Both the position numbers and the translations under genes were made by a program. A model generated the notes under the pieces. It was not told where the DNA came from. It ran no database searches and saw only the letters and a list, made by a program, of their open reading frames with translations. DNA of 64,000 bases from the IMG/VR virus record IMGVR_UViG_3300013094_000017, positions 1-64,000 of that record. One strand, written 5' to 3'. The stretch's first letter is position 1, and every line of letters starts with the position of its first letter. This document shows, piece by piece, positions 1 through 12,002 of this stretch.

Positions 1-71
1 TGTATTCCTTTAGAGGTTTTGGGTTCTCGACAAACTACGCAGGAGCAAGGATAAGATGTTTTATTAGTCAT
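1..71 (-). CDS. 5' part of a probable homing endonuclease-like gene running off the window start (MTNKTSYPCSCVVCREPKTSKGI...)
   Basis: Manual translation of the - strand. ATG at 71 is preceded by TATAAATA (77-84, - strand), as for the other endonuclease genes here. CxCxxC N-terminus. Confidence 0.45.
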   Translation of the reverse strand, partial: MTNKTSYPCSCVVCREPKTSKGI

Positions 72-117
72 ACAAGTATTTATACATCAAAACGAATTTC
101 TCCTACCAAATTGAAAT

Positions 118-211
118 ACCATACAAAAACACATTCTTCAAAGAATACAGGGTTCAATTCCCGGCCGTTGATCACGGAACTGCCAAGGTGGTGAGTGTAT
201 TCCTATATGGT
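118..211 (+). ncRNA. Candidate circularly permuted tRNA-like structured RNA
   Basis: Stems ACCATA/TATGGT (118-123/206-211) and GAATAC/GTATTC (143-148/197-202) enclose a T-arm GGG-TTCAATT-CCC (150-162), hairpin CCGT-TGATC-ACGG and a GG-containing D-like loop. Confidence 0.35.
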
Positions 212-216
212 TCAAT

Positions 217-291
217 GTTGTCTATAGTGTAGTGGTAGCACCCAATCCTGTGAAGATTGTAGTATGAGATCGATACTCATTAGACAACCCA
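217..291 (+). tRNA. tRNA-His (GTG)
   Basis: Cloverleaf with encoded G-1, C73 and CCA. Anticodon arm CAATC-CT GTG AA-GATTG. T-loop ATCGATA. Confidence 0.9.
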
Positions 292-298
292 AAGTTTT

Positions 299-373
299 GC
301 CTCGTTCATATAGTGGTTATTATGTCCGCCTGTCTAGTGGAACATAGGGGTTCGATTCCCCTACGAGGCGCCA
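299..373 (+). tRNA. tRNA-Asp (GTC)
   Basis: Acceptor GCCTCGT/ACGAGGC, loop CT GTC TA, TTCGATT T-loop, CCA. Confidence 0.93.
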
Positions 374-382
374 AATTAAAGG

Positions 383-411
383 TTGACGTGAAAAATCGTT
401 GACTATATAAT
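383..411 (+). promoter_or_regulatory. sigma70-type promoter
   Basis: TTGACG-N17-TATAAT. Confidence 0.8.
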
Positions 412-433
412 AGTAACAGTTAGAAAGATCAAT

Positions 434-506
434 TGCGGTAGAAGTGTAGTGGCGCATGATAGTCTCATAAGCTATCGGGGTGGTTCGATTCCAACGTCCG
501 CATCCA
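434..506 (+). tRNA. tRNA with CAT anticodon (Met or Ile2), imperfect acceptor and D stems
   Basis: ATAGT-CT CAT AA-GCTAT arm, TTCGATT T-loop, CCA. Two mismatches in the acceptor stem. Confidence 0.65.
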
Positions 507-522
507 TAATTAGGAGAAGTAA

Positions 523-684
523 ATGGCAGTTAAGAAAGCAAATCCAATGCAGACACGCACTGGTAAGACACGGTTAGGTCCATTGAATTTAACACAGTTA
601 CAAACTATGTTAGAAAAGACTTCTAAGAAAAAGATCAAGGCGCAGATTCAAAAGCGCATTGCAGAATTAGAAGCACGTAAGTAA
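523..684 (+). CDS. Small basic hypothetical protein (53 aa, MAVKKANPMQTRTGKTRLGPLNL...)
   Basis: Manual ORF below the track cutoff. AGGAGA RBS at 512-517. Confidence 0.75.
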   Translation: MAVKKANPMQTRTGKTRLGPLNLTQLQTMLEKTSKKKIKAQIQKRIAELEARK

Positions 685-692
685 AGTTTTAC

Positions 693-767
693 GCCCAGTT
701 AGCAGAGTGGTAATGCGCCTCACTTGTAATGAGGATATCGGGAGTTCGATTCTCTCACTGGGCACCA
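693..767 (+). tRNA. tRNA-Thr (TGT)
   Basis: GCCCAGT/ACTGGGC acceptor, CCTCA-CT TGT AA-TGAGG, CCA. Confidence 0.95.
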
Positions 768-774
768 GTATTAA

Positions 775-859
775 GCCCCTTTGGTGGAATTGGTAGACAC
801 CGCGGTCTTAGAAGCCGCCGACGAAAGTCATGAGAGTTCGAGTCTCTTGGGGGGCACCA
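775..859 (+). tRNA. tRNA-Leu (TAG)
   Basis: Class II cloverleaf, GCGGT-CT TAG AA-GCCGC, long variable arm, A73, CCA. Confidence 0.92.
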
Positions 860-869
860 AAAGTTTTAT

Positions 870-943
870 GCGGGATTAGTTTAATGGTAGAACTGCAGAT
901 TTCCAATCTCCTGGTGAGGGTTCGATTCCCTTATCCCGCTCCA
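870..943 (+). tRNA. tRNA-Gly (TCC)
   Basis: GCGGGAT/ATCCCGC acceptor, loop TT TCC AA, U73, CCA. Confidence 0.92.
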
Positions 944-1155
944 GAACACAAGGTTTACACTTTTACCTTATAGAAAGTGGGTCATTGCTAATACCAGAAC
1001 GGCAGGGTGCGCACGATGGTCTAGACCATACCACAAGTCCCACTATCCGGGAGCCTTGAAAGTATCGTGGGAGTTTTATTGTTTCTTACCATATGGAAAC
1101 AGTTGGACAGGGTAACTACTCAGTTTTGGGCTCGGTTGTGCGAGTAGCAAAACAC
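944..1155 (+). ncRNA. Structured non-coding segment (possibly the 5' domain of the GOLLD-like RNA)
   Basis: H-type pseudoknot AAGGT/ACCTT (950-954/965-969) plus CACTTT/AAAGTG (958-963/974-979). Hairpins ATGGT-CTAG-ACCAT and TCCCAC/GTGGGA. No credible ORF. Confidence 0.4.
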
Positions 1156-1161
1156 TGATTC

Positions 1162-1236
1162 GGGCTGTTAGTATACTGGGTATTATTCCTGCCTTGCACG
1201 TAGGAGAAGACGGATCGTAACCGTCACGGTCCACCA
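1162..1236 (+). tRNA. tRNA-Ala (TGC)
   Basis: G3:U70 pair, CCTGC-CT TGC AC-GTAGG, T-loop ATCGTAA, CCA. Confidence 0.9.
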
Positions 1237-1242
1237 TATTAT

Positions 1243-1319
1243 AGAGGATTAGCTCAGTTGGTACGAGCAACTGCCTTACAAGCAGAAGGTCACTGGTTCG
1301 ACCCCAGTATCCTCTACCA
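1243..1319 (+). tRNA. tRNA-Val (TAC)
   Basis: AGAGGAT/ATCCTCT acceptor, CT TAC AA loop, CCA. Confidence 0.95.
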
Positions 1320-1326
1320 GTTCTAT

Positions 1327-1405
1327 TCCGCAGAATCCGAGCTAGGCGCACGGACTTGACTGTTAATCAATGATTAGCTGGGTTCGAATCCCAGATGCGG
1401 AGCCA
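1327..1405 (+). tRNA. tRNA-Asn (GTT)
   Basis: TTGA-CT GTT AA-TCAA arm, TTCGAAT T-loop, G73, CCA. Confidence 0.88.
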
Positions 1406-1409
1406 TATT

Positions 1410-1511
1410 TGCAGAGCGTGGGCTAGTCTAGCGTCGACGTACACTCCGAGTTAGTTGCAACTAACAACAGATTGTGAAAACTAGACAACGAGGTTCGATT
1501 CCTTACTGCAT
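1410..1511 (+). ncRNA. tRNA-like element with an expanded anticodon domain and no CCA
   Basis: TGCAG/CTGCA acceptor-like stem, T-arm GAGG-TTCGATT-CCTT, and helix GTCTAG/CTAGAC (1426-31/1481-86) enclosing about 50 nt. Confidence 0.45.
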
Positions 1512-1521
1512 CTTAAATTTA

Positions 1522-1976
1522 TCGTCGATAGCCGGAGCAAATCCTTTGAGCGGCTTGAGCATAAGCAAGGCACCGAGACGCAGGTGTATATTTCCGGTGA
1601 AAGTCCGGACGGTAATAGATTTTATCTCCCTCCGTAAAGGATGGAACAGTGAGCTCTCAGTTCCCTGCAAGGTAGTAGTAGACAAGAAGCAAACAGGCGT
1701 ACTAGTCATACGCAATGTGCTGATTAGGTCGCTATGCAACCTCTGACAATAGGTCATGACTGGCCAACGATAGGAGACACTTGTAAAGCTCTCACAGTTT
1801 AACCGGTGGTGAAAATCCACAGGGGAGGCCAGTTTTGGGATAGACGGCAAGATCTTAAACGAGTCCTAAGTAGCGTCAGTAGTACGAAACACATTTTGCG
1901 CGAAATATAGATGAGCTCTCTTGTTCGAGACAATCCAGCAAGGCCTTTGGAGAAAAGGATAGCTGGGCGCCCAAAA
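1522..1976 (+). ncRNA. Large, highly structured ncRNA; GOLLD-like candidate
   Basis: About 450 nt without a credible ORF between tRNAs. Many helices: GCAGG/CCTGC, CCGG-TGAAAGT-CCGG, GTGG-TGAAAAT-CCAC, CTGGCC/GGCCAG, TTTTGGG/CCCAAAA. Blocks ATAAGCAAGGCACCG..GGTGTA, GCAAGGTAGTAGT and ATACGCAAT resemble the GOLLD 3' domain as I recall it (unverified). Confidence 0.65.
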
Positions 1977-1986
1977 ACCCTTTTAT

Positions 1987-2061
1987 GCTTCGGTAGCTCA
2001 GTGGTAGAGCAATCGGTTGATAACCGATAGGCCGGTGGATCGTTCCCACCTCGAAGCACCA
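1987..2061 (+). tRNA. tRNA-Ile (GAT)
   Basis: ATCGG-TT GAT AA-CCGAT, T-loop ATCGTTC, CCA. Confidence 0.92.
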
Positions 2062-2069
2062 TTTATATG

Positions 2070-2098
2070 TTGACAGACGGATAAACATCTGTTATACT
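2070..2098 (+). promoter_or_regulatory. sigma70-type promoter
   Basis: TTGACA-N17-TATACT. The spacer contains the inverted repeat ACAGACG/CATCTGT. Confidence 0.8.
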
Positions 2099-2265
2099 AT
2101 GTTTTAAGATTTGGAAGAAAGCCGGTACATTATGTATTCGAGGTTAGGAGAGACCGGCAAACCGTCCGATTAGAGTAGGTAATACTGCGGTTCGACTCCG
2201 CCGATTGAATTACTGTATGATTCTGCACATACCTAACAGGCCTGTATTGGCCGCAGATCGTTTAT

Positions 2266-2354
2266 GGAAGGTTATGCAATCTGGGATATTGCCGCGCACT
2301 TGAAATGCGCTGGAGCCTACGGGCCAGGAGTTCGATTCTGCCATCCTTCCGCCA
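2266..2354 (+). tRNA. tRNA-Ser (TGA)
   Basis: Class II, GCGCA-CT TGA AA-TGCGC, G73, CCA. Confidence 0.88.
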
Positions 2355-2366
2355 GTTTGAAAATAC

Positions 2367-2457
2367 GGAGAGTGGGCCGGACGGTAAGGCACCACCCTGC
2401 TAAGGTGTACACTTGTGATGAACAGGTGACAGGGTTCGACTCCCTGACTCTCCGCCA
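2367..2457 (+). tRNA. tRNA-Ser (GCT)
   Basis: GGAGAGT/ACTCTCC acceptor, CT GCT AA loop, long variable arm, CCA. Confidence 0.93.
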
Positions 2458-2462
2458 AATAC

Positions 2463-2500
2463 CCGGTGTTAGTTAAATGGATATAACAGGGGATTTCGTA
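2463..2500 (+). pseudogene. Orphan 5' half of a tRNA (apparent Arg-TCG)
   Basis: Acceptor strand, TA, D arm GTTA-AATGGATA-TAAC, GGGGA-TT TCG TA, then abruptly TAAATA. No 3' half follows. Confidence 0.6.
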
Positions 2501-2512
2501 TAAATAAACAAT

Positions 2513-2589
2513 GCGGTTGTAGCTCAGTGGATTAGAGCAACGAGCTTCTACCTCGTTGGCCGGGGGTTCGAGTCCCTCCAGCCGCACCA
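2513..2589 (+). tRNA. tRNA-Arg (TCT)
   Basis: ACGAG-CT TCT AC-CTCGT, canonical arms, CCA. Confidence 0.95.
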
Positions 2590-2604
2590 TTTAATAGAAT
2601 ACTT

Positions 2605-3288
2605 ATGTATCAAAAATTAACTAACTGTAAATATTGCAATGTTTCATTACTTGAAATGACTACTTCTCGGCGAGCAAATCACTCTCGATGGTGCAAACTA
2701 AATCCTAAGCATACTGAATATATAAATGCATTAGAAATTTCTAGAGAGAATATAGTTAATCGACGTAATCAATTTATGAAGGCTAAAGAGGATGGAAGGC
2801 CGATTCCGCCAGGAACACAGACCGGAAAACCAGGTACAATGTTAGGTAAGAAGCATTCTTCTAAAACTAAACAGCGTCAAAAAGAAAAGGCACTAGCAAG
2901 TCCTCATAGAAGATTAGTTAGATCTATTCGGAAATATACAAAAAAGGACGGAACTATAGTTAGTTTAGATTCGTTCTGGGAAGAAGCATTAGCTATTCGG
3001 CTTGATACTATAGGTGTTAACTGGATAAGACCGTCGCCTATTAAATGGATAGACAATGATAACGTAACTCATAATTACTTTCCAGATTTCTATCTACCAG
3101 AGTTTGATTTATATTTAGATCCAAAAAACCCGTATGCTGTCAAAGCTCAACAAGTTAAGATACAGTGTTTAAAACAGCAAATACAAAACCTTATAATTAT
3201 AACAAGTTTAGAGGATTGCAACAATTATATTCCTCAACCAGTATTGCCCTATAGTTCAATGGAAGAACGGCTCCCTTATAAGGAGTGA
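2605..3288 (+). CDS. Putative free-standing homing endonuclease (NUMOD3-like DNA-binding repeat plus PD-(D/E)xK-type nuclease domain)
   Basis: GKKHSSKTKQRQ repeat. Motifs SFWE, YFPDFYLP and LDPK. CxxC N-terminus. The 3' end overlaps a tRNA. Confidence 0.65.
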   Translation: MYQKLTNCKYCNVSLLEMTTSRRANHSRWCKLNPKHTEYINALEISRENIVNRRNQFMKAKEDGRPIPPGTQTGKPGTMLGKKHSSKTKQRQKEKALASPHRRLVRSIRKYTKKDGTIVSLDSFWEEALAIRLDTIGVNWIRPSPIKWIDNDNVTHNYFPDFYLPEFDLYLDPKNPYAVKAQQVKIQCLKQQIQNLIIITSLEDCNNYIPQPVLPYSSMEERLPYKE

Positions 3289-3336
3289 GTGCTAGATAAG
3301 CCGCTAATGTAGGTTCGAGTCCTACTAGGGGTACCA
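3245..3336 (+). tRNA. Atypical tRNA with TAT anticodon (Ile?) and long variable arm
   Basis: D arm GTTC-AATGGAA-GAAC, GCTCC-CT TAT AA-GGAGT, about 20-nt variable arm, GTAGG-TTCGAGT-CCTAC, CCA. The top two acceptor pairs are mismatched. Confidence 0.7.
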
Positions 3337-3338
3337 AT

Positions 3339-3413
3339 GCTGATGTAGCGTAGAGGTAGCGCAACGCCTTGGTAAGGCGTAGGTCGTGGGTTCAACTCCC
3401 ATCATCAGCACCA
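3339..3413 (+). tRNA. tRNA-Thr (GGT)
   Basis: GCTGATG/CATCAGC acceptor, ACGCC-TT GGT AA-GGCGT, CCA. Confidence 0.93.
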
Positions 3414-3432
3414 GCAATACAGTAAGATCAAT

Positions 3433-3460
3433 TGGCTCATGGTGTAGTGGTAGCACAACT
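3433..3460 (+). pseudogene. Orphan 5' fragment of a tRNA (Gln-like TGG start)
   Basis: TGGCTCA-TG-GTGT-AGTGGTA-GCAC-A, then broken just before the TAAATA promoter and HNH gene. Confidence 0.55.
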
Positions 3461-3502
3461 CAAAAAAATCCTTTATGTTGCTAAATACAGTAAGGAGATA
3501 AT

Positions 3503-4063
3503 ATGTTAGTTACTATTATAGAATACATGAACCAGACGAGAGAAGAAAGACGCTCTCGATTAAAGTTAGATGAACCATGCGATGAGCGCGGATTAGTGTA
3601 CAGTTATCATTTAACTGGGCTATTAGCGTACTTAACAAACACAAGTATACCTAAAAAAGGTGATAACGCTATTGTGTGTCATGGATGTAACAACGCAAAA
3701 TGTTCAAACCCAAATCATTTATATTGGGGATCTTATAAGGATAATCATACGGATCAGGTTGAAAATGGAACATGGGATAGTCCGTATGCTAGGGCTAAGA
3801 AAAAATACAGTACTGTTGAGATGAATGAGATATACTCAAACAATGCCAAAGGTAATAAAGGTAATAAACAACCTAGATCCGAAGAGCATAAAAGAAAAAT
3901 ATCTGAGTCAATGAAAAAAGTTCAGCAAGAACTAAATCCTAATTTAGGAAAAGTAAGAAACAAAGTAGAATGCCCTCATTGTGGAAAGCAAGGTGCTATG
4001 AATACAATGAGCCGATGGCATTTTGATAATTGTCTTAATAGGCGTGTGGTGAAGATGGCTTAA
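3503..4063 (+). CDS. HNH homing endonuclease with NUMOD3 and C-terminal Zn finger
   Basis: CHGCNNAKCSNPNHL...DN (HNH motif), RSEEHKRKISES, CPHCGK...HFDNC. TAAATA at 3482 and AAGGAG RBS. Confidence 0.85.
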   Translation: MLVTIIEYMNQTREERRSRLKLDEPCDERGLVYSYHLTGLLAYLTNTSIPKKGDNAIVCHGCNNAKCSNPNHLYWGSYKDNHTDQVENGTWDSPYARAKKKYSTVEMNEIYSNNAKGNKGNKQPRSEEHKRKISESMKKVQQELNPNLGKVRNKVECPHCGKQGAMNTMSRWHFDNCLNRRVVKMA

Positions 4064-4117
4064 CACACTGGATTTTGATTCCAGCATTCCTAGGTTCGAA
4101 TCCTAGCACGCCTGCCA
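4040..4117 (+). tRNA. tRNA-Gln (TTG), 5' end overlapping the HNH stop
   Basis: AGGCGTG/CACGCCT acceptor, CTGGA-TT TTG AT-TCCAG, G73, CCA. Confidence 0.9.
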
Positions 4118-4237
4118 GAACAGTCCGGGAACAGCTCTCCTTTCGTAAGAAAGTGTAACTGACTATAGCTGGGATTTACCAGTGAACTTACAGGACGCTG
4201 TAAGGTACGGGCATACAGGAGGATAACTCCAATCTAT

Positions 4238-4311
4238 TCCGGTGTAGTATAATGGCAGTGCGACGGTCTCCAAAACCGTTAGTGGGGGTTCGATTCCCTC
4301 CACCGGAGCCA
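4238..4311 (+). tRNA. tRNA-Trp (CCA)
   Basis: ACGGT-CT CCA AA-ACCGT, G73, CCA. Confidence 0.95.
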
Positions 4312-4320
4312 AACAATGTG

Positions 4321-4349
4321 TTGACTTTTAGTTAAGTTGATAGTATAAT
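4321..4349 (+). promoter_or_regulatory. sigma70-type promoter
   Basis: TTGACT-N17-TATAAT. Confidence 0.8.
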
Positions 4350-4376
4350 GTGCTTTTATTTGAAATGGAGCATGAA

Positions 4377-4841
4377 ATGTCAAAAGTTATTAAATCAGAG
4401 TATGTTGAAGCAGCCATGGAACAATTAGATAGTGCGGCTAAATTACTCAAAACAGCCTACACCAATCCAAACAAAAATCTTGTGTTAATATTAGACATGA
4501 TTGATGATATTTGGGGGCAATTAGAATTGCTAGCTGATACACAGTACGACAAAGAAAATCCAGGTAAAGAAATGACGCAGGCTCAATATGACACTGAGCA
4601 CAGTGAGCGGGTGGCTAGGATTAAAGCCCTACAAGAAGTTACCATTACCAAAGTAGACAAGGCCACATTCAAAGCCATTAGTGATGATTTATACACAGCA
4701 ATTGGCAATGTCAGTGGCAAATACAATCTGTCTATTGCCTTTCCGTTATCCAGTTTCTCATTCCGTGCCTATGATTCGGAGAATCCCGAGCAGTATTGGC
4801 CACTAGGTAGAGAGTTTGATACAGAAATAAATCCATTATAG
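4377..4841 (+). CDS. Hypothetical protein
   Basis: ORF track. Start moved to the ATG after the GGAG RBS. Confidence 0.7.
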   Translation: MSKVIKSEYVEAAMEQLDSAAKLLKTAYTNPNKNLVLILDMIDDIWGQLELLADTQYDKENPGKEMTQAQYDTEHSERVARIKALQEVTITKVDKATFKAISDDLYTAIGNVSGKYNLSIAFPLSSFSFRAYDSENPEQYWPLGREFDTEINPL

Positions 4842-4842
4842 G

Positions 4843-4871
4843 TTGACAGGTACCATATGCTCCTGTATTAT
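4843..4871 (+). promoter_or_regulatory. sigma70-type promoter
   Basis: TTGACA-N17-TATTAT. Confidence 0.6.
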
Positions 4872-4899
4872 TAATGAATAGTCAAAAGGACAAAAGAAT

Positions 4900-5469
4900 A
4901 TGAACGTTACATTACGTAAAGCAAGTGCGTTACAGAACGCAATCAACGACACAATCAAAGGCATTCAGCTTAAAGTAGCTGTAAACCTAAGTGAGTTCCA
5001 AGATGCAGAAACAGTAATTTCTAAATCTCGCCAAGCATTGTTAAACAATGTTGATCGCAAGGTAGCACTAACCAAGGCATTGTATGCAATTCGCGCCTCA
5101 GTAGGTGCAGCAAACAACGCCTCAGTAGATGCACTGTTGGCACAGGTAGCACAGGTTGAAAAAACAATCCAAATCTACACAAACTTAGCTGAAACAGAAG
5201 TGCGTGAAGATGCCACAGTTATTGCAGGTAAGTTGGATAAGATTAAGAACCGCACAGCAGATGCTCGTCCAAGTTACTACGGACACAGTGACGAAGTAAA
5301 CACCAGTGTATTAACACAAGATGATATTGAATCTTTCCGAGGTTTCATTGCACTGGCAAAGAAAAACAAACAGACTTTGCAGGATCAAATCCTTGAAGCA
5401 AACGTTCGCACTGAAATCACTTTAGATGCAGACACAGTAGCAACACTAACAGCAGAAAAATTGCTGTAA
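4900..5469 (+). CDS. Alpha-helical coiled-coil protein (weak resemblance to DIP1984-like proteins)
   Basis: ORF track, AAAGGA RBS, heptad pattern. The family resemblance is by eye only. Confidence 0.7.
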   Translation: MNVTLRKASALQNAINDTIKGIQLKVAVNLSEFQDAETVISKSRQALLNNVDRKVALTKALYAIRASVGAANNASVDALLAQVAQVEKTIQIYTNLAETEVREDATVIAGKLDKIKNRTADARPSYYGHSDEVNTSVLTQDDIESFRGFIALAKKNKQTLQDQILEANVRTEITLDADTVATLTAEKLL

Positions 5470-5474
5470 TAGTT

Positions 5475-5745
5475 TTTGGTGGTTTGGCTCTAGGGCTAAA
5501 ATCACCCAGATGTGAGAAAGAGACGAGGATTGGCAAGGACATCATACATCGTATGATTCCATACTTAATGAGCAATCGCCTTGAAAAGCGATCGTGTTTG
5601 CGTGTTCCGGTTATTATATAAATTTGTTTATTGCCACCGTTGAAATATGCAAGCCCCTGTGTTTTGAACATTGTCTTTTGTCAGCGGATATTATAATAAT
5701 ATCTTTTGTCATTTGCTGTGCCATTTACTTACTTTCTCAATCTGT
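5475..5745 (+). ncRNA. Structured RNA directly downstream of the coiled-coil gene
   Basis: 13-bp closing helix CAGAT(G)TGAGAAAG/CTTTCTCAATCTG (5507-20/5732-44), internal hairpins, and duplicated CTTTTGTCA flanking a hairpin. Confidence 0.5.
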
Positions 5746-5751
5746 TTCTTC

Positions 5752-5829
5752 GCACACGTGGCTGAGTGGCCCAAAGCAGCGGCCTGCAAAGCCGTAAAAC
5801 CGCCGGTTCAAATCCGGCCGTGTGCTCCA
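5752..5829 (+). tRNA. tRNA-Cys (GCA)
   Basis: GCACACG/CGTGTGC acceptor, CT GCA AA loop, U73, CCA. Confidence 0.93.
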
Positions 5830-5830
5830 T

Positions 5831-5906
5831 AGTAATGTAGCATAGTGGCTAATGCGGCACCTTCATACGGTGTATATCGTGAGTTCGAGTCTCACCATTA
5901 CTACCA
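5831..5906 (+). tRNA. tRNA with CAT anticodon (Met or lysidine Ile2)
   Basis: AGTAATG/CATTACT acceptor, GCACC-TT CAT AC-GGTGT, CCA. Confidence 0.9.
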
Positions 5907-6024
5907 GCTTTACATTAACAACCTTAACGCAACTCGGTACACGGATACCTGATCAGTGGGAGTGTTTGACATAGTCGGACCGCTGCAACACTGTGGGTGG
6001 CAAAGCCGTGCTCGTTGTTAATTT

Positions 6025-6100
6025 GCCCTGTTAGTTCAACGGATTAGAATTAGAGTCTTCGAAACTCAGGATGGGGGTTCGATTCCCTCACGGGGCACCA
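6025..6100 (+). tRNA. tRNA-Arg (TCG)
   Basis: Loop CT TCG AA, GCCCTGT/ACGGGGC acceptor, CCA. Confidence 0.9.
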
Positions 6101-6150
6101 AACAAGTAATCGCATAATGTAGCGGAATACACTACGTTATGTAAATCAAT

Positions 6151-6226
6151 GCGGCTGTAGCTCAGTTGGTAGAGCGTCTGCTTGCCAAGCAGAAGGTCAC
6201 GAGTTCGAGACTCGTTAGCCGCTCCA
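6151..6226 (+). tRNA. tRNA-Gly (GCC)
   Basis: TCTGC-TT GCC AA-GCAGA, U73, CCA. Confidence 0.95.
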
Positions 6227-6236
6227 TTTATTTTGA

Positions 6237-6265
6237 TTGACAGTTGGTAATACCTATGCTATAAT
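6237..6265 (+). promoter_or_regulatory. sigma70-type promoter with extended -10
   Basis: TTGACA-N17-TATAAT, with TG at -15/-14. Confidence 0.8.
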
Positions 6266-6289
6266 ATGCTTGTACAGTTAGGAAATGAT

Positions 6290-6595
6290 ATGAAACACTA
6301 CGTATATGAACCAGGTATAAAGAAAATTGAAAAAGTATTACCGTATTCTGTGGCTGTTCCGCAGGGTTATAAAACTCACGCACAGGCCCTATGCCAACGA
6401 ATATTAGGCAAAAGATATTGTCGTTGGGATCCAAGATGGCGCAGAGTTAATAATTGGACAGTGAAAACCACTACCAGGTGGACAGTATATGAAGATGCAG
6501 TTTGGCACTACAAAGATGGTATACTTTACTTCAAAGATGAAGCTAATACTAAAATGCTTACAATGGTATTATTAAGTAAAACCAAAAGGAGATAG
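6290..6595 (+). CDS. Hypothetical protein
   Basis: ORF track. Likely start after the AGGA RBS. Confidence 0.65.
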   Translation: MKHYVYEPGIKKIEKVLPYSVAVPQGYKTHAQALCQRILGKRYCRWDPRWRRVNNWTVKTTTRWTVYEDAVWHYKDGILYFKDEANTKMLTMVLLSKTKRR

Positions 6596-6599
6596 TACT

Positions 6600-7082
6600 A
6601 TGAAACCATGGATTGAAAACATCAGCTTAGAAGATGTAAAGAAAGGCTATCACCACGATGCTGGCGATAATTCTATGCTAATTCAAATCGTAGATCCTGG
6701 TGTAGAGTTTCCAACTCCTAAGTACAAGTTTAAGCGAGTATCACAGTACTTCTTCCTTGATGTAGAGGATAGAGATATTCCCGGTGCTATATTTGATGCG
6801 GCAATCACTGACGCAGACGCTATCGGTATTGCCGAAGATTTGAAATACGCATTGGCCAATAACATGAACGTAATTGTTCACTGTCATATGGGTGTGTGCC
6901 GTAGTGGTGCTGTAGCAGAAGTAGGTGTTATGTTAGGTTTCCAAGATACTGAAAAGTATCGTATTCCTAACACAATGGTCAAGCGTAAACTTATGGAATA
7001 CTTTGGTATGACATACACAGAGTCCGAGCTCCCTAAAGGGGCTTGGGCACTTGACGAAAATGGAATTAGACATTATTATTAA
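6600..7082 (+). CDS. Cys-based protein tyrosine/dual-specificity phosphatase-like protein
   Basis: VHCHMGVCRS is an HCX5R(S) signature. Confidence 0.8.
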   Translation: MKPWIENISLEDVKKGYHHDAGDNSMLIQIVDPGVEFPTPKYKFKRVSQYFFLDVEDRDIPGAIFDAAITDADAIGIAEDLKYALANNMNVIVHCHMGVCRSGAVAEVGVMLGFQDTEKYRIPNTMVKRKLMEYFGMTYTESELPKGAWALDENGIRHYY

Positions 7083-7088
7083 GAATAT

Positions 7089-7164
7089 GCTACCTTAGCT
7101 CATCTGGTAGAGCACCGGCCTGAAGAGTCGGGTGTGCTTGGTTCAAGTCCAAGAGGTAGCACCA
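7089..7164 (+). tRNA. tRNA-Phe (GAA)
   Basis: CCGGC-CT GAA GA-GTCGG, GCTACCT/AGGTAGC acceptor, CCA. Confidence 0.93.
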
Positions 7165-7180
7165 AACAAAGGAAATAGAT

Positions 7181-7348
7181 ATGGCAGGCATTTACGGAGT
7201 TTATGAAAAATACGAAGGTCCAGAAGACTGTGATGTAGCCTATTCTAAAGTACAATCTGGCGAATGGGATCTAGCACGCTTTAAGGAATATGTGAGCTGT
7301 GTTGAGAAGATCACATGGCAAGATGCCACCGCAGATGAGAGTTTCTAA
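7181..7348 (+). CDS. Small hypothetical protein (55 aa, MAGIYGVYEKYEGPEDC...)
   Basis: Manual ORF with AAGGA RBS. Confidence 0.65.
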   Translation: MAGIYGVYEKYEGPEDCDVAYSKVQSGEWDLARFKEYVSCVEKITWQDATADESF

Positions 7349-7350
7349 TC

Positions 7351-7611
7351 TTGACAGAAGATGAACAACTAATGTGGGATGTGCTCAAGGCATCACCTGA
7401 TGCTGATTGGGTAGAGTTCCGTAAACAGCATAATCGACTTTGGCTAACTAAAGATCGCAGAATTGTCCTGATAAAGAACATGCAAAGCGACTACATTCTT
7501 AGTTGTGTTAATATGTTGGAAGCATTAAGTCAAACCAACACTGCGGCCTATAAGGGATTGATTAAAGAATTGCGCCAAAGAGGAAGTCAGATACCTGACA
7601 ACTCAATATAG
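7351..7611 (+). CDS. Hypothetical protein
   Basis: ORF track, tight packing. Confidence 0.6.
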   Translation: MTEDEQLMWDVLKASPDADWVEFRKQHNRLWLTKDRRIVLIKNMQSDYILSCVNMLEALSQTNTAAYKGLIKELRQRGSQIPDNSI

Positions 7612-7627
7612 AAAAGAGGATAACGAT

Positions 7628-8083
7628 ATGAACAGTACATTTAGCAGTTTGATTGGACACCGCATCAACGCAGTGTTTCTCGCCAACGCAAATGAGACCA
7701 TTGTTTTCCGCACGACTGAGGGAAAGTATCTACGATTTGATACCTGCAATGATTGTTGCAACACTGTTTGGTTTAATCACATTAACGGTAGTGGCTGTGT
7801 TGGGCAGGGTGACACCTTTGATCTTATCCGTGGTGCATTAGTTATAGGCTGCGAGGATAAAGATTGGACTGAGAATAGAGCCTGGACCCCAGAAGATGGC
7901 GGCGATTACGGTGATACTATTCAAGACGGATTCTACACCATCAAGACTGACCGCGGTTATATTGATCTAGAAGTGCGTAACGATCACAACGGCTACTACG
8001 GTGGCACTGTTATGGAAAATGAAGATCTTGATTGGGAGATTACCGATCTAGAAAATCTTGTAGAGATTAAGGAAGATTTCTAA
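7628..8083 (+). CDS. Hypothetical phage protein (DLEVRNDHNGYYGG motif)
   Basis: ORF track, GAGGA RBS. Confidence 0.75.
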   Translation: MNSTFSSLIGHRINAVFLANANETIVFRTTEGKYLRFDTCNDCCNTVWFNHINGSGCVGQGDTFDLIRGALVIGCEDKDWTENRAWTPEDGGDYGDTIQDGFYTIKTDRGYIDLEVRNDHNGYYGGTVMENEDLDWEITDLENLVEIKEDF

Positions 8084-8084
8084 A

Positions 8085-8360
8085 ATGAAAATTATCAAGT
8101 TAGACCGCAGACACAGAATGCGGCGAGATTTTGATATGCGATATGCTCTAGTTTGGGAAAGTTATGGATATGTTTGCAGACCATATGAAAAATGGTTAGA
8201 AAAGCAATTTGGAGTAAGTTGGTATACACATAATCCTCATTGGAAGTCAGGATACGGTAGCAATTCTAGCCGTGGCGATCGTCCAACTTTCTATGTCGCA
8301 GTCAAAGAAAAAAGTACATTAACAATGATGTTTTTGGCATTAGGAGATACAAATGAATAA
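8085..8360 (+). CDS. Hypothetical protein
   Basis: ORF track, coupled spacing. Confidence 0.7.
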   Translation: MKIIKLDRRHRMRRDFDMRYALVWESYGYVCRPYEKWLEKQFGVSWYTHNPHWKSGYGSNSSRGDRPTFYVAVKEKSTLTMMFLALGDTNE

Positions 8361-8697
8361 ATTTGATTGGGGCGGTATATTCAGCAAAGTGCCAGACCAT
8401 ACTCAAGAGGCACTCGAACGCTATTTCCTGTACGGATTAGAGCCAGGCAGTTTCTTACAAGCGGTATTAAGCAATGACCTGTACAGTGCTGTGGCCCGTG
8501 CAGATACTTGGAACAAAACTGCTATAGCAGAAATTGTAACTTGGATTGCTCACAACGCACCGGAAGGCAGTTGGGGACATCCTGACTATTACCGTGAATG
8601 GGTTAACAAAGGTCCTGCATTTGTTCGATTTGAAAAGAGTCGTGTTTGGAATATTTTGTCTAATGAACACACAGAAATGAAGGAACCTGAGTGGTGA
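8353..8697 (+). CDS. Hypothetical protein
   Basis: ORF track, AGGAG RBS. Confidence 0.75.
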   Translation: MNKFDWGGIFSKVPDHTQEALERYFLYGLEPGSFLQAVLSNDLYSAVARADTWNKTAIAEIVTWIAHNAPEGSWGHPDYYREWVNKGPAFVRFEKSRVWNILSNEHTEMKEPEW

Positions 8698-8882
8698 AAC
8701 AGAAACCAAAATGGGTTGAAACTCGAGAAGCTCTTAAAACAATGGGTCAAGAACCTTTAGAGTTTATTGGCAAAATGGGCGCCGATGGGGTCATTAATGG
8801 CTTACTACCTAACGGTGAAGAGTACGGTTGGTATAAACGTAGAGGCACTAAAGATACTAAATTTAAAGGAAGGAAAGTTTAA
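8691..8882 (+). CDS. Hypothetical protein
   Basis: ORF track. GTG start overlaps the upstream stop. Confidence 0.65.
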   Translation: MVKQKPKWVETREALKTMGQEPLEFIGKMGADGVINGLLPNGEEYGWYKRRGTKDTKFKGRKV

Positions 8883-9454
8883 TGGCTAAAATATTTATGA
8901 TTAGCGATACGCACTTTGGACACAAAGGCGTTTGTGAATTTAAGCGTGATGACGGTGTTACTGATTTACGCCCGTACGATACCGCAGACGAGATGGATGC
9001 AGATATGATTGAAAAGTGGAATGCCAAGGTTGGCCCAAACGATAAAGTTTATCACTTAGGTGATGTTGTAATTAATCGCAAGGCATTGTCTACATTGGGC
9101 AAGTTGAATGGTGAAAAGGTTCTAATCAAAGGCAACCACGATATCTTTAGGTTGGAGGAATATACTCCGTACTTTAAGGATGTTCGCAGTTATCACGTCC
9201 TTAATGGATTGATCCTAAGCCATATTCCGATTCATGAAGCTAGTTTGGGCCGTTTCGGCACTAACATTCACGGACACTTGCACGCCAGTAGAGTTATGAA
9301 GGATGGTGCTATTGATCCTCGGTACTTTAACATGTGTGTTGAGAATCATAATTATGCTCCAGTTGAATTTGAAGAAGTTATGGAGTTAATTAGAGCAGAG
9401 GGCGGCACAGTTGGGTTTCGAGAACACAAATGGCCAAACGAACTAGTAGGGTAA
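8882..9454 (+). CDS. Calcineurin-like metallophosphoesterase
   Basis: Motifs SDTHFGH, HLGD, GNHD, SH and HGHLH. Confidence 0.9.
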   Translation: MAKIFMISDTHFGHKGVCEFKRDDGVTDLRPYDTADEMDADMIEKWNAKVGPNDKVYHLGDVVINRKALSTLGKLNGEKVLIKGNHDIFRLEEYTPYFKDVRSYHVLNGLILSHIPIHEASLGRFGTNIHGHLHASRVMKDGAIDPRYFNMCVENHNYAPVEFEEVMELIRAEGGTVGFREHKWPNELVG

Positions 9455-9460
9455 GCCTTT

Positions 9461-9484
9461 AAATAGGGCTTGCCCTATTTTTTT
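9461..9484 (+). terminator. Intrinsic terminator
   Basis: AAATAGGG-CTTG-CCCTATTT followed by a T run. Confidence 0.75.
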
Positions 9485-9490
9485 GACTTA

Positions 9491-9628
9491 TTAATCGCAG
9501 TCTGAATATGCTTGTACTAAGCGTGCAACACATTCTGTGTCACCTGGCTTACATACAATATTTGGTATACTTGGAGTTGTTTCTTCTTGCAGGGGTTGGA
9601 TTGGTAATGTATCTGTAGTATTTGACAT
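9491..9628 (-). CDS. Small acidic protein (45 aa, MSNTTDTLPIQPLQEETTPSIPNIVCKPGDTECVARLVQAYSDCD)
   Basis: Manual ORF with AAAGGTG RBS and a TAAATA motif upstream on the - strand. Confidence 0.6.
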   Translation of the reverse strand: MSNTTDTLPIQPLQEETTPSIPNIVCKPGDTECVARLVQAYSDCD

Positions 9629-9741
9629 TTTGTGTCACCTTTCTAAAATGAGATTGTGTCTCTAATGATTTATTTATTAAACTACTATTGTATATTAAAG
9701 TACCAATATTGTCAACACCTTGATAAATTTTGATAAATTAG

Positions 9742-9770
9742 TTGACATACTATAAAAAACACTATATACT
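9742..9770 (+). promoter_or_regulatory. sigma70-type promoter
   Basis: TTGACA-N17-TATACT. Confidence 0.8.
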
Positions 9771-9776
9771 AAACAA

Positions 9777-10031
9777 ATGAGATACACTCCAGAACAAATT
9801 ATTGAATTAGCAAAAGAAGTAGAACTTACAGACAACGATATCGAGTGGGATAATTTACCTCTTGAAAAAGATCGTATCTATCAAATCCTCGGTAGTCAAA
9901 CTTTTGATATGTATAGCCGGTGGACTCAAATGGAAGATAGTGATAGCGGCGAAGCTATTATGTTAGCAACCATCACTAAACTACTAGTAGAAAATTTCGT
10001 ATTAAATCTTAAATTAAATCAAGGAAAATAA
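9777..10031 (+). CDS. Hypothetical protein
   Basis: ORF track. Confidence 0.65.
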   Translation: MRYTPEQIIELAKEVELTDNDIEWDNLPLEKDRIYQILGSQTFDMYSRWTQMEDSDSGEAIMLATITKLLVENFVLNLKLNQGK

Positions 10032-10032
10032 A

Positions 10033-10239
10033 ATGGCTAAAACAAACTCCAGTTTCAAGATTGGCAAGATGGTTAAACTATCAATGGGTGCAACGCTTAA
10101 TAAAGAGCAACGTTTAATCTACAAGAACTGTATGATTGATGCTAAACAGTCATATATTGCTAATCGTAATCGTAAACATAAAGATCCTATTGCACGTGAT
10201 AGCAGCAATGATCAAAACAAAGATGCTCCAAAGGCCTAA
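10033..10239 (+). CDS. Small basic hypothetical protein
   Basis: ORF track, AAGGA RBS. Confidence 0.65.
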   Translation: MAKTNSSFKIGKMVKLSMGATLNKEQRLIYKNCMIDAKQSYIANRNRKHKDPIARDSSNDQNKDAPKA

Positions 10240-10242
10240 TTA

Positions 10243-11535
10243 ATGGATTATAAAGTAGCGGACATTGGCCTAGCCGCTTGGGGCCACAAAGAAATTGCAA
10301 TCGCAGAAACGGAAATGCCGGGATTAATGGCAATTCGTAACGAATTAAAACCAAATCAACCACTTAAAGGTGCTCGCATTGTGGGGTCATTACACATGAC
10401 TATTCAAACTGCTGTGCTGGTACAGACTTTAGTTGCTCTAGGCGCAGAAGTGCGTTGGAGTAGCTGTAATATTTTTTCAACACAAGACCACGCCGCAGCA
10501 GCCTTGGCAGAACAAGGTATTCCTGTATATGCTTGGAAAGGTGAAACTGAAGCTGACTACTGGTGGTGCATTGAACAGACTATTAAAAATCCAAACGATC
10601 CAACCTGGAAACCCAATATGTTGTTAGATGATGGACATGATCTAACTTGGTATATCCACACTAACTATCCAGAACTATTAGATGGTATCTATGGTGTTAC
10701 TGAAGAAACAACTACAGGTATTCACAAGATTAACGAAGCTATTGCTAATGGTAGTTTCCGTCTACGTGCTATTAATGTTAACGATAGTGTAACTAAAAGT
10801 AAGTTTGATAACTTATATGGTTGCCGTGAAAGTCTAGTAGATTCGATCAAACGTGCTACCGATGTTATGATTGCTGGTAAGACCGCAGTAGTAGCAGGCT
10901 ACGGTGATGTGGGTAAAGGTTCGGCCGCTAGTCTTAAGGCACTTGGTGCGCAGGTTTGGGTAACTGAAATTGACCCAATCTGTGCCCTACAAGCCGCAAT
11001 GGAAGGCTACAAGGTAGTTACCATGGACTATGCCGCAGACAAAGCAGACATCTTTGTAACAGCCACAGGCAATGTAGACATCATCACACATGCGCACATG
11101 TTAAAGATGAAACACAATGCTATTGTATGTAACATTGGGCACTTCGACAGCGAAATTCAAATTGCTAGTTTGGCTGGCTACGAGTGGGACGAGATTAAAC
11201 CGCAAGTAGATCACGTGACTATGCCTAGTGGTAATAAGATAATTATCTTAGCCAAAGGTCGATTGGTAAATTTAGGTTGTGGTACAGGACATCCTAGCTT
11301 TGTTATGTCAAACAGCTTTACTAATCAAGTAATTGCACAGGTTGAAATGTTCCAAAACTATGCTAACTATGAGATTGGTAAGATGTATTTGTTACCTAAA
11401 CACCTAGATGAAAAGGTAGCTAGTCTACACCTAGCACAGATTGGCGCAGAGCTAACCGACCTAACACCTGCGCAAGCAGACTACATTGGCGTAAAGGTAC
11501 AAGGTCCATACAAACCAGAAACATATAGGTACTAA
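10243..11535 (+). CDS. ahcY: Adenosylhomocysteinase (SAH hydrolase)
   Basis: Motifs [69 protein letters not shown] and C-terminal YRY. Confidence 0.97.
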
Positions 11536-11536
11536 A

Positions 11537-11893
11537 ATGAAAAGACTAGAAGGGTTTGTTGAAAAAGGTTGGGGATCAGAGTTAATATGGGCTACTAACC
11601 ATAAGTATTGTGGTAAACTGTTAAAGTTTAATAAAGATGCCAAATTCAGTATGCACTTTCATGCTGAAAAAGATGAATCTTGGTATGTATTAGATGGTCA
11701 ATTTATTATTAAATGGATTGATACCAGCGATGCTTCATTACATGAGCAATATCTTAATCCAGGGGATACATACCGTAACTTTCCGTTATTTCCTCATCAA
11801 TTGATCTGCATCGAAGAAGGTACAATTATTGAGGTTTCTACTCCGGACAGTGTAGAGGATAACTATCGAGTAATGCCCGGAGATAGTCAGTAA
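11537..11893 (+). CDS. Cupin-domain protein (sugar isomerase-like)
   Basis: KGWGSE, SMHFHAEKDESWYV and PHQL cupin motifs. Confidence 0.8.
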   Translation: MKRLEGFVEKGWGSELIWATNHKYCGKLLKFNKDAKFSMHFHAEKDESWYVLDGQFIIKWIDTSDASLHEQYLNPGDTYRNFPLFPHQLICIEEGTIIEVSTPDSVEDNYRVMPGDSQ

Positions 11894-11894
11894 T

Positions 11895-11989
11895 GCGGTC
11901 GTAAGCAAAAGGCAAAGCTCTAGGACCTAGGTCCTAGGATAGGGAGAACCTAGTTCCCCTTGTTGGTTCGACTCCAGCCGACCGTACCA
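11895..11989 (+). tRNA. Atypical class II (Leu-like) tRNA with a palindromic, even-numbered anticodon loop
   Basis: Acceptor GCGGTCG/CGACCGT, A73, CCA. D arm AGC/GCT. T arm GTTGG-TTCGACT-CCAGC. Anticodon arm is the perfect palindrome CTAGGACCTAGGTCCTAG. Confidence 0.7.
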
Positions 11990-12002
11990 TAAATACACTA
12001 CA

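Follow-up and report, generated by a model that had tools for sequence, protein, structure and literature searches.

A folded non-coding RNA of about 280 nt, carrying a ruler-like row of UG motifs every 7 bases, lies next to one particular gene for a 189-residue, predicted helical protein in hundreds of giant-phage genomes. The two can lie in either order, which marks them as an undescribed two-part RNA-protein module of unknown function. The pair was first noticed in the window, a stretch of 64,000 nucleotides (positions 1 to 64,000 of IMG/VR virus record IMGVR_UViG_3300013094_000017). There, a sequence-only reading had described a separate promoter, an all-helical protein, and, just after its stop codon, an ORF-free block of some 270 nt with hairpins and U/G-rich repeats. 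Every feature listed in that reading is present in the sequence, and the observation is confirmed, on evidence stronger than one sequence could have supplied. The RNA is designated RNA A. The module and its immediate neighbors in the window are as follows.

4843-4871 (+): sigma-70-type promoter, TTGACA-17-TATTAT, matching the consensus at 11 of 12 positions
4900-5469 (+): gene for the 189-residue partner protein, with stop codon TAA at 5467-5469
5472-5750 (+): structured non-coding RNA, RNA A, whole element (nhmmer envelope)
5478-5506 (+): P1, the 5' hairpin, with GGTGG/CCACC ends, preceded by a conserved U-run (UUUUG)
5507-5534 (+): 5' strands of the long closing helix (P2 5507-5520, P2b 5524-5534), including the near-invariant AGAYGAG
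5541-5557 (+): P3 hairpin, ATCATAC/GTATGAT
5575-5592 (+): P4 hairpin, ATCGC/GCGAT, with the conserved loop CUUGAAAA
5594-5655 (+): P5, a long hairpin (5594-5611 with 5637-5655) whose apical region carries two UG motifs 7 nt apart (5625-5626 and 5632-5633)
5658-5680 (+): unpaired UG array, repeats 1-4 (UG at 5658, 5665, 5672 and 5679)
5687-5703 (+): P6, an optional hairpin, GATATTA/TAATATC, inserted in the UG array, with CTTTTGTCA on both sides of it
5707-5715 (+): UG array, repeats 5-6 (UG at 5707 and 5714)
5720-5750 (+): 3' strands of the closing helix (P2b 5720-5731, with the invariant CTT of ACTT; P2 5732-5747) and a U-rich tail that abuts tRNA-Cys
5752-5906 (+): tRNA-Cys(GCA), starting at 5752, and tRNA-Met(CAT), directly downstream (ARAGORN and Rfam)

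Four details of the earlier description required correction. The block is not strictly ORF-free, since ORFs of 45 to 84 residues overlap it, although none is conserved. The RNA is about 280 nt long. The U-run precedes P1, so P1 is not a canonical terminator. The protein model has two short strands as well as helices.

RNA A is a structured RNA

Folded as a single sequence, the block has z = -2.62 on the + strand and -1.70 on the - strand. Comparative evidence is far stronger. Relatives were collected with sequence-only nhmmer profiles and aligned with MAFFT, procedures that do not lean towards the structure. On 119 distinct sequences, 92.1% of alignment cells are paired, compared with 36-46% when the partners are slid. 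Of 49 pairs, 41 show double-sided, compensatory changes, and the covariation score is 0.527 against 0.09-0.125 in the controls. None of 500 shuffles reaches the observed values. By helix, P1 is 92% paired with double-sided changes in 5 of 5 pairs. The closing helix is 93-95% paired with such changes in 10 of 10 and 6 of 11 pairs, P3 is 90% paired with 5 of 5, and P5 is 91-95% paired with 12 of 15. P4 pairs in only 34% of cells in the window's alignment register, but sliding the 3' partner by -1 column gives 79% paired and a covariation of 0.48, indicating an alignment shift of the window row. P6 is absent from 18 of the 119 relatives and folds as a hairpin in 99 of the 101 copies that have it. 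The many conserved G-U pairs fit only the + strand.

No Rfam 15 family (GOLLD, ROOL, OLE, 6S, tmRNA, RNase P, group I intron and others) accounts for the element. There was no match in 5460-5760 even at E <= 10, none at E <= 1 in positions 1-13000, none at gathering scores in the whole window, and none at the RNA A positions of seven relatives. RNase P RNA, tmRNA and group I intron were therefore considered and dropped. We cannot exclude that this motif is among the 8,495 unnamed candidates of an IMG/VR structured-RNA survey (PMC10690425).

These data also largely refute the view that the block is not an RNA gene but a DNA-level element, such as a promoter cluster or a replication or packaging site. 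Promoter-like hexamers do lie inside the block (5530-5557), TTGAC in the 3' strand can serve as a -35 box for the protein gene in some relatives, and short direct repeats are present. However, long-range compensatory changes span 200 nt, the G-U pairs would be A-C mismatches on the other strand, and the internal hexamers are not conserved in relatives. A type III toxin-antitoxin pair (ToxIN, CptIN, TenpIN) is equally improbable. The repeats are 7-nt units inside a non-repetitive 280-nt fold, not tandem units of about 36 nt (34-45 nt) as in ToxI-type antitoxins, and the RNA lies on either side of the gene rather than upstream of it. The protein model is helical rather than a ToxN/Kid/MazF-like barrel, and searches of the PDB and AFDB gave no such match.

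The UG array

The most conserved feature is the unpaired array of six UG motifs spaced exactly 7 nt apart, with two more in the P5 loop. The UG is invariant at all eight positions. Repeats 1-4 are present in 119 of 119 sequences with 7-7-7 spacing in 118 of 119, and repeats 5 and 6 are also 7 nt apart. In the 18 copies that lack P6, repeats 4 and 5 are exactly 7 nt apart as well. RNAalifold left the array unpaired on both alignments. The U/G-rich units pointed out in the sequence-only reading are the invariant, unpaired core of the family. Sites for tRNA-guanine transglycosylase (UGU) were considered and dropped, because the third base is often C.

The RNA and the protein gene are linked in either order

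The sequence-only reading had proposed asking whether homologous genes keep a conserved downstream structure, and we examined linkage from both directions. In a protein-first sample of 89 loci, every locus with enough flank on both sides has the RNA beside the gene on the same strand. For an independent RNA-first sample, a first narrow pattern for the window's clade found only two viral contigs, but a broader pattern of the UG core alone retrieved 118 viral loci. Of these, 114 hold the full RNA, and 110 of the 114 hold a protein match (most full-length, a few cut by the locus end) on the same strand. The other four end within 0-134 nt of the RNA on the side where the gene could lie. Neither sample gave a clear case of one part without the other.

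The order is RNA-first in about 70% of lineages and protein-first in the window's clade. There are 87 RNA-first and 34 protein-first unique proteins, with at least 7 switches on the protein tree. Gaps range from 0-3 nt to about 470 nt, with one case of 1499 nt. A plain terminator, 3'UTR or 5' leader cannot work in both orders and is ruled out. A terminator scan, moreover, reports only a weak site at 5449-5467, inside the ORF end.

In the window the RNA has no promoter of its own, and no promoter-like -10 lies between the stop codon and the RNA in 31 of 33 protein-first relatives. The promoter at 4843-4871, whose function is inferred, would probably drive the protein gene, the RNA and the downstream tRNAs as one transcript. 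In contrast, 70 of 84 RNA-first copies have a -10-like hexamer about 7 nt before the conserved 5' end, the copies displayed showing TTGACA-17-TATAAT, and others start at a tRNA 3' end.

One alternative is an autoregulatory mRNA element, in which the protein binds its own transcript's UTR to set its translation or stability and the RNA has no function of its own. The inferred co-transcription of RNA and gene in the window, the 13-45 nt between the RNA and the start codon in many RNA-first loci, and the use of periodic triplet arrays in this way by TRAP and HutP are in its favor. In RNA-first lineages the RNA is also the 5' leader of the protein mRNA, and part of its 3' strand can double as a -35 box (TTGAC), so some of the conservation could be regulatory. 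We nevertheless consider this unlikely. The RNA occurs on either side of the gene and across gaps of 220-470 nt filled by another ORF or another structured RNA, it has in most relatives its own promoter and a defined 5' end, and its size and conservation equal or exceed those of the coding gene. In protein-first lineages it lies after the stop codon, where it cannot occlude the ribosome-binding site.

The partner protein

The protein has 119 close homologs of 186-192 residues and belongs to an uncharacterized family of at least 1790 clusters at 50% identity (E <= 1e-3), found across lake, marine and sewage giant phages. It has a conserved N-terminus (M-x-[IV]-[ST]-L-R-K-A) and many conserved basic residues, among them R6, K7, R53, R65, K88, K111, K114, K154, K155 and K157. 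The AF2 model (pLDDT 85.9) is helical apart from two 3-residue strands. Sequence searches of Pfam, NCBIfam, PHROGs and the PDB gave only a weak match to phrog_25230, of unknown function (E 2e-4), and coiled-coil noise. No RNA-binding domain is recognizable. A homodimer prediction scored 0.60, with one control at 0.48, and is not evidence either way.

A by-eye resemblance to DIP1984-like helical proteins, suggested in the sequence-only reading, has weak support at the level of fold only. PDB 3kdq, the solved member of DIP1984/DUF6847 (PF20935, labelled 'septicolysin'), is the top Foldseek match (E 0.04, probability 0.99), but its TM of 0.38-0.45 is within the noise for helical proteins. It is the only match that spans the chain in the VIA comparison (Z 8.9, 140 aligned residues, rmsd 6.9), where helical models often reach Z 13 by chance. 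The nearest named ESM-Atlas clusters carry PF20935 (feature scores 0.92 and 0.87), with TM 0.64/0.77 over 147 residues for the closer, a viral cluster in which 19% of members carry PF20935. Membership by sequence is not supported. Against the Pfam model, whose cut-off is 27 bits, there is no hit for the window protein at E <= 0.1, none in the whole genome at E <= 10, and none in the Caulobacter, Brevundimonas or PA5oct homologs. PF20935 is not among the 25 families (of 83) most often matched by 58 members at E <= 1. The window protein is also about 40 residues longer. DIP1984/DUF6847 proteins are helical and common in phages, but the family itself has no known function, so the likeness explains nothing yet.

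Genomic context and cultured phages

Most copies lie in jumbo-phage tRNA arrays: 77 of 85 unique modules have a tRNA within 1 kb, and tRNA-Met(CAT), the usual downstream neighbor of the module, is the next tRNA in 46 of the unique modules that have one downstream. Insertion in a tRNA array is not, however, a defining trait. DNA and protein searches of 50,697 GenBank phage records with the window's own sequences found nothing, but two more consensus-like family members (P0062 and P0118) led to cultured phages that carry the pair with no tRNA nearby, namely Caulobacter phages CcrColossus and CcrPW and Brevundimonas phage Bambus. For CcrColossus gp272, hhalign gives a probability of 98.6% and E 6.8e-16. 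The pair in this phage is gp272 and the 284-nt gap before gp273 (JX100810, 200705-201582). The 284-314-nt gap after the gene in these phages keeps P1, a closing helix with a compensatory change, and 6-7 UG at 7-nt spacing, and in the 280-kb CcrColossus genome the UG pattern occurs only there. The ORFs of 81-82 residues that follow the RNA in the Caulobacter and Brevundimonas phages are not omega-like. The most remote homolog, PA5oct gp180, reported in virions, has no detectable RNA A nearby. The UG pattern is absent from the PA5oct genome, and ncRNA003, defined there by RNA-seq 4 kb upstream of the homolog, is not RNA A.

The tRNA context would also fit a decoy or sponge RNA that titrates a host factor, such as a ribonuclease, an RNA chaperone or a tRNA-targeting defense nuclease. 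Each 7-nt UUGYNNN unit would mimic an anticodon-loop-sized target, with the protein only a stabilizer or an unrelated co-regulated gene. The repeat length equals that of an anticodon loop, and phage tRNA arrays counter tRNA-targeting defenses. We regard this as improbable, because it leaves the strict one-to-one linkage with the protein in both samples unexplained, the pair exists away from tRNAs, no host partner is identified, and the idea rests on a numerical coincidence.

In about 50 loci an rpoZ-like (RNA polymerase omega) ORF sits between the RNA and the protein gene, and in many relatives a second structured RNA lies beside the module. The former observation bears on a further possibility, a cis-acting transcription-control RNA with its cofactor, in the manner of lambda nut-N or HK022 put. 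The nascent RNA, helped by the protein, would modify host RNA polymerase so that it reads through terminators and structured tRNA genes downstream. The order promoter-RNA-protein of RNA-first copies mirrors pL-nutL-N, the closing helix is followed by a U-rich tail, and in the loci examined further genes follow on the same strand, either tRNA-Met(CAT) or, in the Caulobacter phages, CDSs. However, at about 280 nt and seven helices RNA A is three to four times larger than nut or put, it shows no evident boxA or boxB (no boxB-like conserved 15-nt hairpin stands out in the alignment), and the rpoZ-like gene is absent from most loci and from the window's module. The protein, predicted to be folded and helical rather than an arginine-rich peptide, bears no likeness to N, Q or other known antiterminators. 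With no evidence for an effect on RNA polymerase, this remains a minority reading, though the strongest of the alternatives.

A putative ribonucleoprotein

We interpret positions 4843-5750 as encoding a two-component phage module: a discrete structured RNA and a dedicated helical, Lys/Arg-rich protein that works with it, most likely as a ribonucleoprotein. In this view, the RNA in the window would be released from the common transcript by processing, with RNase P at tRNA-Cys setting its 3' end, while in most relatives its own promoter, or a start right after a tRNA, would yield the same 5' end (A/G-UUUUG). The 5' hairpin and the domain closed by a long helix would hold out the array of UUG motifs, and we propose that the protein, probably as an oligomer with one protomer per 7-nt unit, binds it. 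The context, tRNA arrays and the rpoZ-like gene, points to host RNA, translation or transcription machinery as the target. We put the probability of this reading at roughly 0.6. The RNA structure, its strand, the family, the obligate linkage in the loci sampled, the permuted order and the periodic motif are established by the analysis, whereas expression and processing, direct binding, the binding site, oligomerization and the biological role are inferred from genomics alone. Against this reading stand the lack of a recognizable RNA-binding domain in the protein and of a detectable RNA A near PA5oct gp180, and linkage could also reflect co-regulation rather than a physical complex. The interpretation offered in the sequence-only reading, a protein-ncRNA module inserted in the tRNA array whose protein binds the repeated single-stranded units, is therefore supported in part: the structured RNA, far beyond a terminator, and its dedication to the neighboring gene hold, while binding remains a hypothesis.

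A bolder possibility, which we hold only tentatively, is a previously unrecognized class of phage ribonucleoprotein in which an ornate RNA scaffold displays a molecular ruler of six to eight UUG motifs, read by an oligomer of a DUF6847-like helical protein, that giant phages deploy to reprogram a core host machine, either RNA polymerase, as the embedded omega-subunit gene in many relatives hints, or the tRNA/translation apparatus. If so, it would give the first functional handle on the large DIP1984/DUF6847 'septicolysin' superfamily, as RNA-binding proteins. Large structured non-coding RNAs with unknown jobs are rare, and few come with an obvious protein partner. This one may explain part of the non-tRNA content of phage tRNA arrays, and its presence in three cultured, tractable phages makes the hypothesis open to direct test.

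Comparison with known systems

HutP and TRAP provide precedents for an oligomer that reads one repeat per subunit. HutP reads UAG with 4-nt spacers, a 7-nt period, in two clusters, and TRAP reads 11 (G/U)AG repeats; here UUG has 4-nt spacers in clusters of two and six, so that an invariant short motif at fixed spacing in RNA predicted to be single-stranded is shared. The HutP and TRAP sites are short leaders without an ornate scaffold, their proteins have alpha/beta or beta folds, and no homology to either was detected by Pfam, NCBIfam or structure searches.

OLE RNA with its partner OapA, and likewise Y RNA with Ro/Rsr and tmRNA with SmpB, are large, ornate, highly conserved RNAs with a dedicated protein encoded right beside them and a function not obvious from sequence. 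RNA A has no sequence or structural model in common with them in Rfam. Its partner is a soluble helical protein, not a membrane protein or a Ro ring, and the module is viral with a gene order permuted among lineages.

GOLLD RNA and the stable 'species 1 and 2' RNAs of the phage T4 tRNA cluster are non-tRNA structured RNAs encoded among phage tRNA genes and probably co-processed with them, and no dedicated protein partner is known for either. The window has no GOLLD. GOLLD itself is present in the tRNA arrays of two relatives (loci L017 and L003), and in those same loci RNA A is a separate element.

The predicted gene and RNA in the window

The window is the first 64 kb of a 259-kb IMG/VR phage contig from lake water, estimated to be about 73% complete. 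Positions 218-7164 hold an array of 20 tRNA genes, all on the + strand and interspersed with a few ORFs, and the region of interest lies inside this array. The observation made in the sequence-only reading is real: the promoter-like site, the 189-aa ORF and every hairpin that it listed are present in the sequence. The protein is modeled with confidence by AF2 (pLDDT 85.9) and is predicted to be helical except for two three-residue strands at the ends. The intergenic block alone folds somewhat better than shuffled sequences on the + strand (z = -2.62, against -1.70 on the - strand), but the decisive evidence comes from relatives. The features of the block, which we call RNA A, and of the adjoining gene are as follows.

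4843-4871, promoter-like site, TTGACA-17-TATTAT
4900-5469, ORF of 189 aa, the partner protein
5478-5506 (+), hairpin P1
5507-5520 with 5732-5747, and 5524-5534 with 5720-5731 (+), long closing helix
5541-5557 (+), hairpin P3
5575-5592 (+), hairpin P4
5594-5611 with 5637-5655 (+), hairpin P5
5687-5703 (+), optional hairpin P6
5752, tRNA-Cys

Homologues and genetic linkage

The protein has 119 close homologues, nearly all of 186-192 aa and all metagenomic, and a profile search of 1.84 billion representatives finds 1790 clusters at E <= 1e-3. We collected 28 viral loci, 49 metagenome loci, and several contigs of the nearest homologues. In a first comparison the downstream gap appeared variable, from 7 nt to 550 nt before the next tRNA, which taken alone would have ruled out a conserved 3' element. 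However, the nearest relatives (61-87% protein identity) keep the block with clear compensatory changes, and a sequence profile of the block then found it in nearly every locus, in most of them upstream of the protein gene rather than downstream.

In this protein-first sample, every locus with enough DNA on both sides has the RNA beside the gene on the same strand, and the loci without it all end within a few hundred bases. As an independent test, we searched the viral collection with a pattern made only of the invariant UG core of the RNA. Of 118 loci, 114 hold the full RNA, and 110 of those hold a protein match (most full-length, a few cut by the locus end) on the same strand, 82 of them RNA-first and 28 protein-first. 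The remaining four end within 0-134 nt of the RNA on the side where the gene could lie. Neither part, therefore, was seen clearly without the other. On a maximum-likelihood tree of 121 distinct proteins, read without regard to branch support at each switch, the order changes at least 7 times. Spacing ranges from 0-3 nt through about 15-45 nt to 220-470 nt, with one case of 1499 nt. An element that stays with one gene on either side of it, and across intervening genes, is not a terminator, a 3'UTR, or a leader, but must be viewed as a second gene of the same module.

A further conserved structured RNA, designated element B, lies at window 943-1156 (+), between tRNA-Gly(TCC) and tRNA-Ala(TGC). 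Its core is about 210 nt and includes a highly conserved GGACAGAGTAAC...GCTAGACAC segment. On 56 distinct copies, 88% of cells pair against 35-50% in slid controls, 35 of 46 pairs show compensatory changes, and no Rfam match is found at E <= 10. In many relatives element B lies directly after the partner-protein gene, or between that gene and RNA A, so it may be a third part of the module.

Conserved structure and the periodic UG motif

We aligned 119 distinct copies of RNA A with MAFFT, which uses no structural information, derived a consensus fold with ViennaRNA, and counted pairs. Of all cells, 92.1% form standard pairs, against 36-46% when the 3' partners are slid by 1-3 columns. Changes on both sides occur in 41 of 49 pairs, in 954 cells against a shuffle mean of 270, and the covariation score is 0.527, against 0.09-0.125 for the slid controls. 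No shuffle reaches the observed values. The consensus comprises P1, the long closing helix, P3 and P5, while P4 is supported once a one-column misalignment of the window row is allowed. P6 is present in 101 copies and folds in 99 of them. Several near-invariant G-U pairs would be A-C mismatches on the other strand, and the structure therefore belongs to the + strand transcript, not to DNA.

The invariant columns of the family are almost all UG or UUG. Four of these motifs lie between P5 and P6, two lie after P6, and two lie in the P5 apical region. Spacing within each cluster is exactly 7 nt in 118 of 119 copies. In the 18 copies without P6, the fourth and fifth repeats are exactly 7 nt apart, and the six repeats therefore form one continuous ruler into which a hairpin can be inserted. 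Consensus folding leaves the array unpaired. This is the CTTTTGTCA / TTGT run that had been picked out from the sequence alone.

Inferred transcription

In 70 of 84 distinct RNA-first copies, a -10-like hexamer ends about 7 nt before the conserved 5' end, (A/G)UUUUG, and the copies inspected show the full TTGACA-17-TATAAT. Other RNA-first copies start right after the CCA end of a tRNA. In 31 of 33 protein-first copies, including the window, there is no such promoter and the RNA starts 1-3 nt after the stop codon. That the same 5' end is reached by three routes suggests a discrete RNA. By inference from sequence, the RNA in the window is probably made from the 4843 promoter together with the protein mRNA and the tRNAs, and would be trimmed at its 3' end by RNase P at tRNA-Cys (5752).

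Occurrence outside tRNA arrays

Of 85 distinct modules with at least 1 kb of flank, 77 have a tRNA within 1 kb, and the next tRNA downstream is usually Met(CAT). However, the module is not tied to tRNAs. Family members also hit cultured giant siphophages, namely Caulobacter phages CcrColossus (gp272) and CcrPW (gp279), and Brevundimonas phages Bambus and Marchewka. Homology to CcrColossus gp272 is confirmed by hhalign over the full length (probability 98.6%, E 6.8e-16). In each of the three loci examined (CcrColossus, CcrPW, Bambus), an unannotated gap of 284-314 nt follows the gene, among ordinary CDSs. That gap keeps P1, the closing helix, and 6-7 UG at 7-nt spacing, and the closing helix carries a compensatory A-U to G-C change in Bambus. 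The CcrColossus gap folds with z = -4.97, and in the whole CcrColossus genome the UG pattern occurs only there.

A more remote homologue is gp180 of Pseudomonas phage PA5oct (MK797984 107445-108008), for which about 30% identity was found with family member P0118 as query. No RNA A is detectable in that genome. The record of gp180 carries the note 'ESI-MS/MS', which in the PA5oct paper (PMC7318152) marks virion-associated proteins.

Structural resemblance and proposed mechanism

The protein has no Pfam, NCBIfam, or PDB sequence match. By structure, the top Foldseek hit of the model is PDB 3kdq, an uncharacterised Corynebacterium diphtheriae protein (E 0.04). It is the only solved chain that aligns over most of the model, but the score (VIA Z 8.9) is within the range that helical models reach by chance. 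The nearest named ESM-Atlas clusters carry PF20935 (DUF6847, 'septicolysin'), yet PF20935 itself does not match at E <= 10. The likeness to DIP1984 that had been proposed by eye is therefore a plausible remote relationship, not membership, and the literature searched gave no function for that family.

We favor a dedicated RNP, in which the fold presents the UG ruler and the Lys/Arg-rich helical protein reads it, probably with one protomer per 7-nt unit. HutP (UAG with 4-nt spacers) and TRAP are precedents for this mode of binding. The structure, the linkage, and the motif rest directly on the analyses described here, whereas the binding, its stoichiometry (for which a dimer prediction spoke neither way), and the role of the complex are inferences. 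The sequence-only interpretation, a two-component protein-ncRNA module in which the protein binds the repeated units, is supported in part.

The main rival is a cis-acting antitermination RNA with its cofactor. It draws on the position of the RNA after the promoter and on an ORF resembling the RNA polymerase omega subunit (rpoZ-like; PF01192, 41.8 bits, above the cut-off) that sits between RNA A and the partner-protein gene, always on the same strand, in about 50 relatives; the example in L017, a related locus, is at 2774-3004 (+). However, that ORF is absent from most loci. Of 61 loci with at least 2 kb of flank, 24 have one somewhere in the locus, and the window's own genome (G000) has only a weak, distant match at 233889-234026 (-). 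Phage omega genes are not known to have been described, and this one hints at a link to host RNA polymerase.

Neither RNA A nor the protein is in Rfam 15, Pfam, or NCBIfam. The papers searched describe no such pair, although prior listing as an anonymous motif cannot be excluded, since a 2023 survey of IMG/VR lists thousands of unnamed candidate structures.

Other features of the tRNA arrays

GOLLD RNA (RF02032, 199 and 189 bits) lies in the tRNA arrays of two relatives, at L017:1155-1619 and L003:5-469, about 1-2 kb upstream of RNA A, while the window itself has none. Related phages at two other loci, L022:4585-4952 and L012:5563-6251, carry permuted (two-piece) tmRNA genes in the same tRNA arrays, and the tag peptide in L022 is ANDELFALAA.

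Two endonuclease-like ORFs lie inside the tRNA array at window 2605-3288 and 3503-4063 (+), a PD-(D/E)XK/resolvase-like one (phrog_15137) and an HNH/NUMOD homing-endonuclease-like one, and relatives have a 176-180-aa minus-strand ORF inserted after the partner gene. These are probably selfish insertions. A small ORF with a weak match to the dual-specificity phosphatase signature (PF00782, below cut-off) is conserved just downstream of the tRNA block that follows the module (window 6600-7082 (+); related locus L030:4348-4770).

Rfam finds a borderline tRNA at window 435-502 (+) (29.5 bits, cut-off 29) that ARAGORN does not call. At window 11895-11989 (+), ARAGORN calls a 95-nt 'tRNA-???' with a two-base anticodon (ta), for which Rfam gives only a weak tRNA-Sec-like score (24 bits, E 0.45), and which may be an odd or degenerate tRNA outside the main array. 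A tRNA-Ile(TAT) of 92 nt at window 3245-3336 (+), far longer than a normal class I tRNA, is conserved in relatives (L003:645-736, L017:1801-1892) and may carry an insert or a long extra arm.
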